Positions 56,765-60,333 of a stretch of DNA of 64,000 nt are shown here, one piece after another; position 1 is the first letter of the stretch, and the number at the start of each line of letters is the position of its first letter. Location of the stretch: contig JAHLTZ010000030.1 in the NCBI GenBank assembly GCA_025786725.1, positions 62,001 to 126,000 of the forward strand, in the 5' to 3' direction. The notes beneath the pieces are model-generated. The model searched no databases. It had not been told where the DNA came from and worked only from the letters and a program-made list of their open reading frames with translations. Source of the DNA: Syncephalis fuscata S228 (Eukaryota > Fungi > Zoopagomycota). The position numbers were made by a program, and so were the translations under genes.

Positions 56765-57198
56765 GCGTTGACAATACTGAATACCACAACAATTAGACTC
56801 ATTGTTATAATCCTTTACACTTATACATTACACATTAACATTAAATAGCTTAAAACGCACACTTTTTTGGATTTTCAAATAATAAACGAAATTACACGAT
56901 ACAATAGTAGACACGTGTAATGAAGAGACAGCGGATAACAATGGAGTATTGATTGTGTACCATTATAGTGTAAGACAATGCAAACACTAGCACAAAAGAG
57001 GTCGAAAACCCGTAGCGAACACTATAATAAAGTAGGATGTTGGGATAAAGAAGTTTGAAACACTAGTGAGTAGTGGGGATGATGATAAAGGTGGTGAAAA
57101 TGTGTTAAAGATTCAATCATTAAGCTAACTAATTAACTAGTTAATTAATATAGCTGTAAAGAGACCATCTCTTAATACGCCAACTAATAATAGCTTGC

Positions 57199-58545
57199 TT
57201 AAGCGGTAGCGCTGACTGGTTGAGCAACACGCTGTGGCACTTCTAGACCGGACCAGACATTGATACCTTCGCGCTTCAATTTCTCGGCACGCACGGTAGC
57301 GAGGAAGTCGCCGAAAAGATATTCAGTATCCATGGGTCCGCCCTTAGCTTCTGGATGGAATTGCACAGAGCTAAAAAGGCCACTTTCGTGCCAAATGCCT
57401 TCGTTGCTGCCATCGTTAGCATTGACAAAGTAACGGTGCCAGCCAGATGGCATCTTTTCGTCGCATAGAGCATAGCCGTGGTTCTGCGAGGTAATGACAC
57501 AACGTCCATCGCGGGTATTGACGACCGGCTGGTTATGGCCACGGTTACCGAATGGCAACTTCTTGACCGGTAGACCAGCCGCCAAACCAAGCAATTGGTT
57601 ACCCATGCAAATACCAAAGATTGGTCGTTGGTAAGTGTGCAATGTAGTCTTTAGATTGTCGATGGCCTCGGTAGCCTTTTCAGGATTGCCTGGTCCGTTG
57701 GAGATGAACAGGCCGTCGTATTGCTGAGCAACTGCGTTGAAGTTGTAGTTCCATGGCAGAACAGTAACACATGCGCCGCGTTTAACCAACGAGCGAATAA
57801 TGTTCTGTTTGACACCACAGTCAAGCAAGGCAATCTTAACGTCGCCTTCAGCGTTGTAAACGACTGGCTGTTTAACAGATACCTTGGCTACAAGGTTATC
57901 AGCATTTGGATCGGCCCATTGAATTTGCTCAGTAGTCATCTTGACATCGGATTCACCAACGGCAAGTTGGCCAAGTGTAGAACCTTGATCACGTAGCAAG
58001 TGAACGAGTGCACGTGTATCGACACCAGTAATGGCTGGCACGTCATTACGGGCACACCAGCTGGCCAACGACTCAACAGCATTCCAGTGCGAGTAACGTT
58101 GGGCATAATCGCCAACAACAATACCGCTAACTTGCACGTTTTCTGACTCAAAGTGCTTCAACAAGCCAAATGAATCACGAACAAGTCCTGGAACACCGTA
58201 GTTACCGATGAGCGGTTGTGTGAAAACAAGGATTTGACCGCTGTAAGATGGATCAGTCATTGACTCGGGATAGCCAACCAACGAGGTGGTGAAAACGGCC
58301 TCACCGTTAACGCTGCGAGCTGCGCCAAACGACTCGCCATGGAAGACTTGGCCAGTCTTAAGCTGCAAGGCAGCTGGTACATTTTGGCCGGCTGTCTCGT
58401 TAGCAAGTGTAGAGCCCACCTGCTTGCCATGGAGTGGCGAATCAGCAACAGTGGCTAGACCTCGAGTAGCAATACGGGCGGTGGTTGATGAACGAGCAAG
58501 TCGTAGAGCATTGGCAAACAAAACAGATTTGTTAATAAGCGACAT
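57199..58545 (-). CDS. CPA1: Arginine-specific carbamoyl-phosphate synthase small (glutaminase) subunit with mitochondrial targeting peptide
   Basis: GEAVFTTSLVGYPESMTDPSY.GQILVFTQPLIGNYGVP, SNGPGNP, FGICMGNQ, GNRGHN, ITSQNHGYA, SVQFHPEA.GGP.D; intronless CDS. Confidence 0.98.
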   Translation of the reverse strand: MSLINKSVLFANALRLARSSTTARIATRGLATVADSPLHGKQVGSTLANETAGQNVPAALQLKTGQVFHGESFGAARSVNGEAVFTTSLVGYPESMTDPSYSGQILVFTQPLIGNYGVPGLVRDSFGLLKHFESENVQVSGIVVGDYAQRYSHWNAVESLASWCARNDVPAITGVDTRALVHLLRDQGSTLGQLAVGESDVKMTTEQIQWADPNADNLVAKVSVKQPVVYNAEGDVKIALLDCGVKQNIIRSLVKRGACVTVLPWNYNFNAVAQQYDGLFISNGPGNPEKATEAIDNLKTTLHTYQRPIFGICMGNQLLGLAAGLPVKKLPFGNRGHNQPVVNTRDGRCVITSQNHGYALCDEKMPSGWHRYFVNANDGSNEGIWHESGLFSSVQFHPEAKGGPMDTEYLFGDFLATVRAEKLKREGINVWSGLEVPQRVAQPVSATA

Positions 58546-58733
58546 AATTGAATCTTTTTGGAGTTTGGATAAATCAAATGTAGTAAAAGTGTTTCAAATA
58601 ATTCTTTAGCACAACAAGTAAGTGTCGCGCGTAAAATACGGGGTGGTAAAAAGAAGGAAAAAGAGAGAGAAAGTAAAGAGTAGTTCAAGCGTTCAGTAGA
58701 GTGCAATGGTTTATCGAGTACGATTACCAAAGT

Positions 58734-58922
58734 TTAGCAGGAAGGGCCGAAAGTAAAACCGGTAGCCTTCCAAACTATATACAGGAACATGGAAGCAGTA
58801 TTGTAAAGTATGTAGTTAGTTAAAGGTATCTATATAGCGTATATTGCAACGTCATCTTGAGTAAACTTACCGTGATCAGAAATGTAGTCAGAGGAGTTTC
58901 TTTCTTGCGCGTGCGAGTACAT
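58734..58922 (-). promoter_or_regulatory. Spliced uORF encoding the arginine attenuator peptide MYSHAQERNSSDYISDHVWKATGFTFGPSC (exons 58922-58871 and 58774-58734)
   Basis: ATG TAC TCG ... GAC TAC ATT TCT GAT CAC G|GTAAGT ... CTAAC ... TATAG|TT TGG AAG. DYISDH.WK is the AAP core (yeast QDYISDHIWK, Neurospora QDYLSDHLWR), and it lies upstream of CPA1. Confidence 0.95.
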
Positions 58923-60333
58923 GCGCAAAGTGTGTTGTTGTTAGTAAGCCAGAAGGCTAGTGTTGATAATCGAAGTAGATTCGATAAAGCACAAAGCTTG
59001 AAATCAAAGTAGAAGCAAGTTAAACGAAAAGTGAACGAAGAGGAAAATACAAACTTTCTCGATAAGACGGACGGTTTTATTCCTCCTCTCTGCGGGCATG
59101 TTGATATGAAACGCAATGATGATTGGTGGATAAACAAGTTCCAGATCTTAATCCATCTTCACTCACTCACCCACCCACAATATTGTGTATGTATATAATA
59201 GCAGATACATTACAACAATAATAGATAATTAATAACAACGATAGTAACAGGTTAATGACAACAAAATAGCATGGATCAACAATAATATCGTATTATAATA
59301 GAATATTTAACAGCAATAACAATAAATAACACTGATAACAATAACAGATACTGATGACATATTAGTAATTATTTGGATCTATTAATCAGTATTGATCATG
59401 TAATTTAATCATTTATAATCCTTTGGATTAGAAACAACATCTTATTTGAAACTGTTTTGTTTCAACAGTTACAGTATCAAAACAAATTAAACTTCCGATA
59501 AAAACGGTTAAATCTATCCGATACAAATAACTCCGAACAATAAGTAGGCCCAAAATGGCAGATTTTTCTTTATTGTGAGGGGTATCACTTTTACAAAGAC
59601 GGCTTACTGCAAAATAGTATTTCTTATTCCAATTGATTTGGACATGTGATTATGCAGTAGATCATGTGGCCATAGCTATATGTCTAGAACAAGTATTAGA
59701 ATACCGCCATGCTATACTGCAGTTATTATTAGTGTTAGCGTTGTTGTTGTTGTTAATGGTCAAAGGGGGCGGTTTGATATTTGATCGGGCTGCAGGATGG
59801 CCTATCATTTGTGTCACCTGGCGAAGCCATCTTTTTGGCACACGGTCCAAACCAAGTCAACGTCCTTCCTTTTTGTTCCGATCCATGCATATCCACATGT
59901 TTTGAATAACAATTACAACAACGGCTGCCTCGTGCTTCATACCGGCTATAGTTCAACAATGACGATAATGGATATCGGCTTGGCAATTAGTAGCTCGGCC
60001 GTAACCTTCTCTCTTGGACAAAAAAGAACATGGCCATTGCCGTTCTTATCATTGTGGCTCTCCTTTCTCGCTCGCCCGTTCGCTTTATGCACTCTTATTA
60101 TGCCGAGAGTTTAAAACTCAGCAAGTAGTTTTAAAGCATTCCCATTCTTATTACTATTATACAACTAGACTCGATTTATCAATTCGATGATTAAACTGGT
60201 CCATTGGCTTGGTCAATTAAACACTGTTTGCTAATTGCTAGTAAGCTAGCTAGTTAATCCACTAGTTAGCAGTTGTGTTACTCAATCAGTGAATGAATCC
60301 ATGGGTGGGTACGTGAATTGTTTAGTTAGTCAC

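Follow-up and report, generated by a model that had tools for sequence, protein, structure and literature searches.

A spliced arginine attenuator peptide uORF upstream of CPA1 in the early-diverging fungus Syncephalis fuscata

Does the CPA1 leader of an early-diverging fungus encode an arginine attenuator peptide (AAP) whose two halves are joined by splicing, and where would a ribosome arrest on a peptide with so long a C-terminal tail? The nascent AAP stalls the ribosome upon arginine, a response that is abolished by D12N, and D12 contacts uL4 at the tunnel constriction (PMC7038982). In Neurospora extract, toeprinting placed the stalled ribosome with the uORF stop codon in the A site (PMC4505036). 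According to one passage in a review, ribosomes stalled on the AAP obstruct scanning, and stalling favors NMD of the CPA1 mRNA (PMC11550727, citing Gaba 2005); a second passage there describes AAP function as independent of where the AAP is placed within a polypeptide (citing Fang et al. 2004). AAPs from several fungi are described as active in Neurospora extracts in a passage of another article (PMC7049704, citing Hood 2007).

The locus examined here lies in a 64,000-nucleotide stretch of the Syncephalis fuscata S228 genome (contig JAHLTZ010000030.1), hereafter the window. An earlier note, made from the letters of this DNA, had pointed to an intron-split AAP uORF upstream of CPA1, and this observation is confirmed: the uORF is a genuine, expressed and correctly spliced AAP orthologue, identified as such because of its conserved core, the spacing within that core and its position upstream of a CPA1 orthologue. 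An early-diverging fungus that has received little study thus carries, expresses and correctly splices the uORF of a known nascent-peptide sensor.

The spliced uORF and the gene downstream

Reading of the window sequence gives a 30-codon uORF spanning 58922-58734 on the minus strand, with two exons and one intron. The leader and gene are arranged as follows.

58923 to 59019, minus strand: 5' leader before the uORF, at least 97 nt (minimum extent), ATG-free, from RNA-derived contigs
58871 to 58922, minus strand: AAP uORF exon 1, 52 nt, encoding MYSHAQERNSSDYISDH plus base 1 of codon 18
58775 to 58870, minus strand: AAP uORF intron, 96 nt, GTAAGT...TATAG, phase 1 in codon 18
58734 to 58774, minus strand: AAP uORF exon 2, 41 nt, in which TT completes codon 18 (GTT, Val)
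58546 to 58733, minus strand: intercistronic leader, 188 nt, AUG-free, unspliced
57199 to 58545, minus strand: CPA1/arg-2-type CPSase small subunit, 448 aa, intronless, Pfam PF00988 and PF00117

The uORF opens with the ATG at 58922-58920 (context cgcATGt, C at -3), and its intron has a TTAAC/ACTAAC-like branch site near 58823. After Val18, exon 2 reads WKATGFTFGPSC (W19-K-A-T-G-F-T-F-G-P-S-C), followed by TAA at 58736-58734. The peptide is therefore 30 aa long, MYSHAQERNSSDYISDH before the intron and VWKATGFTFGPSC after it, with a core of N9-S-S-D12-Y-I-S-D-H-V-W19-K20. D12 and W19 were already said in the earlier note to occupy the positions of the critical Neurospora arg-2 residues, and their spacing proves to be the same in all 15 leaders compared below. 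As the note also had it, the uORF is invisible in the ORF track, where the listing holds only an unrelated 105-aa TTG frame; gene callers overlook the AAP uORF because the intron splits it. A search of the 29.4-Mb assembly for the pattern DYISDH plus base 1 of codon 18 returned a single match, at the uORF itself, and the reversed control returned none.

The uORF stop is separated from the CPA1 ATG (58545-58543, context attATGt, A at -3) by 188 nt, and the uORF and CPA1 lie on the same RNA contigs. In agreement with the proposed position upstream of CPA1, the 448-aa ORF contains the CPSase_sm_chain (PF00988) and class-I GATase (PF00117) domains, and among named homologues the closest, at 57-64% identity, are arginine-specific CPSase small subunits from Mucoromycota and Zoopagomycota.

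For evidence of splicing, contigs from four runs were mapped onto 57100-59400. Run X1 contains 81% of the gene's words, and its contigs cover the CPA1 coding region, the 3' end, the intercistronic leader, both uORF exons and the leader to 59015, with a depth of zero at 58794-58870, in the intron, and from 59025 to 59400. Without depth in the intron or upstream of ~59024, X1 behaves as RNA of the same organism, its RNA status being read from this coverage pattern and not from its record. Run X2 belongs to a separate study with another organism label, is ~97% identical, and includes a contig reaching 59019. The joint 58774/58871, which skips exactly 58775-58870, is found in contigs of both X1 and X2, and thus in two studies; the skipped part ends CT..AC on the plus strand, corresponding to GT..AG on the gene strand, and in the X2 contig the junction is flanked by 119 and 149 bases. 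The 96-nt intron of the earlier note is thereby seen at its exact junction, which is also the check by RNA that the note had proposed. Furthermore, RNA contigs continue ~97 nt past the uORF ATG, so that transcripts begin upstream of 58922, the contig ends giving a minimum for the 5' end. Given the junction and the contigs upstream of 58922, neither of these two grounds on which the note would have given up its reading was encountered. No intron-retained form occurs among the X1 and X2 contigs, in which rare isoforms are not visible.

Spliced contigs extending to 59015-59019 place the uORF in the mature mRNA, where it can be reached by scanning, as its ATG is the only one in the mature leader from 59019 to 58546. 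Two more ATGs sit within the uORF intron, and splicing removes both. A candidate second leader intron at 58604-58727 on the minus strand was rejected, because an X2 contig spans 58656-58774 without a break, X1 depth continues through the region and no corresponding joint was found. A structured RNA or riboswitch was likewise ruled out as a reading of the leader, for which an Rfam scan yielded only two sub-threshold chance matches and no structured-RNA family. At 58657, in a pyrimidine run of the intercistronic leader, ~3100 of the 22800 X1 contig depth has one extra A/T, reflecting either variation in homopolymer length or an error of assembly.

The same uORF in related CPA1 leaders

The comparison of CPA1 leaders across early-diverging fungi that the earlier note had called for was made with the DNA around CPA1 homologues and one pattern scan of metagenome contigs, which gave only 3 loci; each leader was read exon by exon. 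The strict motif D[YFH].[ST]DH skips the relatives, most of which have Q17 or C15, and a looser scan finds them. Counting the window, the same uORF is found in fifteen CPA1 leaders from the Mucoromycotina, Mortierellomycotina, Zoopagomycota and soil fungi, including the genera Jimgerdemannia, Umbelopsis, Rhizopus, Linnemannia, Basidiobolus and Calcarisporiella and eight other contigs. The peptides compare as follows, with identities relative to the window.

Window: MYSHAQERNSSDYISDH and VWKATGFTFGPSC, 30 aa
78% relative, one species (L002 transcript, L001 genomic): ...NSSDYISDQ VWKSTGKATAF, 28 aa
Second 78% relative (L013): ...NSSDYLSDQ IWKAVGNTFAC, 28 aa
67% relative (L014): ...IWKSAGQTI, 26 aa
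Jimgerdemannia (L003): ...IWKAT, 22 aa
JGI contig (L015): ...IWKSVGAN, 25 aa
Umbelopsis (L005): 25 aa
Rhizopus (L006, L012): 25 aa
Linnemannia and Mortierella-like (L007, L010, L011): 26-27 aa
Basidiobolus (L008): ...NSSDYISDQ IWKALNQTN, 26 aa
Calcarisporiella (L016): 25 aa

All fifteen share the layout MY.H..E(K/R)N..DYI.D(H/Q).WK with invariant D12 and W19, and D12, Y13, D16 and W19 are kept from the Zoopagomycota to the Mucoromycota; at position 17, most relatives have Gln and the window keeps His. Together with the codon-18 intron and a uAUG in weak context ahead of a main AUG in strong context, this layout can serve as an annotation guide.

In all ten genomic copies (10/10), the uORF is interrupted after base 1 of codon 18 by an intron of 54-238 nt. 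The site is essentially the same from chytrids through the Zoopagomycota to the Mucoromycota, including leaders of genes in which the CPA1 coding introns have all been lost, and the codon-18 intron is ancestral rather than peculiar to the window. Five of the relatives' sequences (L002, L013, L014, L010 and L012) are natural spliced transcripts. One of them, L002, aligned with its genomic counterpart L001, proves splicing at the codon-18 site in a second species, where the intron is of the GC-AG type (L001:2573-2810, 238 nt, GC donor, GCAAGT...CACAG). In Rhizopus delemar (L006:2341-2472), the AAP intron is 54 nt long, a multiple of three, and free of stops. A further copy, in the 2055-nt JGI contig L015 (L015:6-200), has the AAP intron unspliced and begins 5 nt before the uORF ATG; if the sample is a metatranscriptome, this contig would represent an RNA that kept the intron.

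The start contexts are also kept. A pyrimidine (C or T) stands at -3 of the uORF AUG in 15/15 leaders and A at -3 of the CPA1 AUG in 12/12, so that the weak uORF AUG and strong CPA1 AUG described in the earlier note for the window recur in its relatives. Such an asymmetry is what a leaky-scanning design would predict, and it is the strongest indirect support for uORF function obtained in this analysis.

Two other features had been singled out in the note as unusual. The first, a length of 30 aa, stands in part: the window peptide is the longest of the 15 compared, with a tail of 11 aa after W19 against 3-9 aa in the relatives, and it does not share the model-AAP trait of 24-25 aa with a stop right after the conserved region. 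However, it lies at the end of a continuous range of 22-30 aa (22, 25, 26, 27, 28 and 30 aa in the census), and its two closest relatives have 28 aa. As natural lengths run from 22 to 30 aa, length is not a family-defining trait. The window tail is related to those of both 78%-identical relatives (WKAVGNTFAC and WKSTGKATAF); compared with L013, it has a two-codon insertion, a common K-A-x-G-x-T-F, a terminal Cys in both and several synonymous differences. The long tail is a modest trait of the window's small clade. The second feature, SSDY, loses its standing in these lineages: position 11 is Ser or Ala in 15/15 peptides, and NSSDY is also present in Basidiobolus and in both 78% relatives. With S or A at this position being the rule in early-diverging fungi, SSDY is no departure within the clade. 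The 2007 survey by Hood reportedly covered many fungi, and both the uORF intron and long-tailed AAPs have probably already been described.

Arginine response and the position of arrest

The arg-2 AAP of Neurospora crassa is likewise a uORF in the leader of an arginine-specific CPSase small subunit, with D12 and W19 at the same positions and a poor uAUG, and it shares with the window the core S-x-D-Y-(L/I)-S-D-H-(L/V)-W-(R/K)-A. It is 24 aa long, whereas the window peptide has 30 aa and a stop 6 codons further from the core. Position 11 is Gln in Neurospora and Ser in the window, the N-termini differ (MNGRPSVFT and MYSHAQERN, respectively), and the Neurospora AAP, unlike that of the window, is not split by a codon-18 intron. 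The AAP of Saccharomyces cerevisiae, a 25-aa uORF of CPA1, belongs to the same gene and has the same core, QDYISDHIWK in yeast and SDYISDHVWK in the window. It differs in having no intron, in the number of its critical Asp (D13) and in its tail after Trp, of 5 aa against 11 aa. For S. cerevisiae CPA1, leaky scanning, arginine-dependent stalling and NMD are given as established in passages of two articles (PMC7049704; PMC11550727). With the early-diverging AAPs, the window uORF shares the layout, the phase-1 intron in codon 18 and the asymmetry of AUG contexts.

With high confidence, the best explanation of the locus is an AAP orthologue, with a predicted circuit of arginine stalling, leaky scanning and, most likely, arrest in mid-elongation. 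The uORF sequence, its splicing and transcription, its uniqueness in the genome, its conservation and the asymmetry of AUG contexts are observed, and to these homology would add the response to arginine, leaky scanning and the stall position. The CPA1 mRNA begins at or upstream of ~59019, and removal of the 96-nt intron joins the halves of the uORF, which bears the first and only upstream AUG. Because the context of this AUG is poor, with a pyrimidine at -3, some scanning ribosomes would skip it and start at the strong CPA1 AUG 188 nt downstream. At high arginine, by analogy with the model AAPs, the nascent core would act in the exit tunnel to arrest the ribosome, which would then block scanning ribosomes behind it and lower CPA1 synthesis. 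In Neurospora, the arrested ribosome has residue 24, 12 positions beyond D12, in its P site. The same distance in the window would put arrest around codons 24-25 (58757-58752), with F24 (58757-58755) as the P-site residue, and since the window stop is at codon 31, the ribosome would most likely be caught in mid-elongation.

A stall at the end of the uORF instead, on its stop codon, in the manner of the Neurospora and yeast AAPs, with the tail compacted or the sensing depth tolerant, is the alternative that carries most weight, and it is possible, if doubtful. Canonical AAPs stall at the termination codon, Pro28 near the window stop could slow termination, and G23 is kept in many tails (WK[SA]xG), a hint that some of the tail is important. 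However, between 10 and 18 residues separate D12 from the C-terminus in the 15 peptides, a spread not readily explained by a fixed contact between D12 and uL4 if all of them stall at the stop. In addition, the AAP works as an internal domain, as the passage on engineered AAP fusions indicates (Fang et al. 2004, cited in PMC11550727): there, the core lay within a longer polypeptide and arrest took place during elongation. Elongation arrest is more likely for the window's geometry, and going by that passage it is not new in kind; the fusions were laboratory constructs, whereas the extension in the window is natural, short and within the uORF.

Other readings of the locus fare less well than a stall at the stop codon. 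It is improbable that the conserved uORF lacks arginine sensing in this lineage and represses CPA1 either constitutively or by way of NMD. Serine replaces the Q11 of assayed AAPs, the H17 of the window is Gln in most relatives, and to our knowledge no AAP of the early-diverging type has been assayed, a literature search on AAPs in early-diverging fungi having returned, among the papers available, no such assay and nothing else specific to them. Against this, the peptide sequence itself is strictly conserved from the Zoopagomycota to the Mucoromycota, beyond the mere presence of an ORF, and conservation of D12, Y13, D16 and W19 is the pattern predicted for a nascent-peptide sensor. Still harder to credit is the codon-18 intron as a regulated switch, in which retention would yield a non-stalling peptide and derepress CPA1. 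The reading frame with the intron retained, MYSHAQERNSSDYISDHGKFTQDDVAIYAI, does encode 30 aa that end at an in-intron TAG and lack W19, in line with the earlier note's remark that retention would remove this residue; moreover, the intron persists even in leaders of CPA1 genes with no coding introns left, and L015 is unspliced, be it of DNA or RNA origin. Introns near the 5' end are generally lost last, though, so the persistence of this one needs no special function; the X1 and X2 contigs include no retained form, with zero X1 depth in the intron, and retention in R. delemar would leave both AAP halves in frame in a 43-aa peptide, where the window frame is truncated before W19, so that the proposed effect is not conserved. 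A related and only marginally less improbable idea is that splicing gates AAP function and the intron is kept for it, while the clade's long tail moves arrest into elongation and thereby uncouples it from termination-linked NMD. As for a chance ORF combined with a chance GT..AG interval of no biological role, the small size of the uORF is the sole point in its favor, and the RNA junction, the genome-unique pattern and conservation in 15 leaders have already refuted it.

The known AAP mechanism is unchanged by these findings. To a specialist the uORF is an ordinary member of a well-known regulatory family, whose added value lies in annotation and in the tail-length series. The spread of tails, from 3 to 11 residues past W19, is a natural set of variants with which to ask what determines the stall site, the distance to the core or the stop codon; this question bears on the coupling of stalling to NMD.

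CPA1 N-termini and divergent leaders

The first ~35 residues of the window CPA1 (MSLINKSVLFANALRLARSSTTARIATRGLATV, 58545-58440, minus strand) abound in R, S, T and A and lack acidic residues, and this N-terminal extension looks like a mitochondrial presequence, as predicted from its composition. The main protein of the Neurospora arg-2 system has a presequence-like N-terminal extension as well. Mucorales CPA1 orthologues are ~50 aa shorter, and their alignment begins only at ~residue 60.

Two further leaders show divergent forms. Upstream of CPA1 in Synchytrium microbalum (L009:2170-2460), an apparent AAP is divided among three exons, MYAHKYEK, VSNDYIADQ and VYKSFIAA, in which D12 is kept, Tyr stands for W19 and an extra intron follows codon 8; the position of its second intron is shifted 2 nt upstream relative to that in codon 18 of other lineages. 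Upstream of CPA1 in Diversispora eburnea (L004:2130-2330), a divergent AAP-like uORF, MKSYSGTTSADYIAQQ, is followed by a GT donor, with VWKSSSTS downstream in another frame, Asp at position 11 and Gln in place of D16. In Linnemannia hyalina (L007:1549-2500), the uORF ends ~757 nt before the annotated CPA1 ATG, against 29-310 nt elsewhere, and a gap of this size suggests either an additional intron in the leader or a wrongly annotated start.
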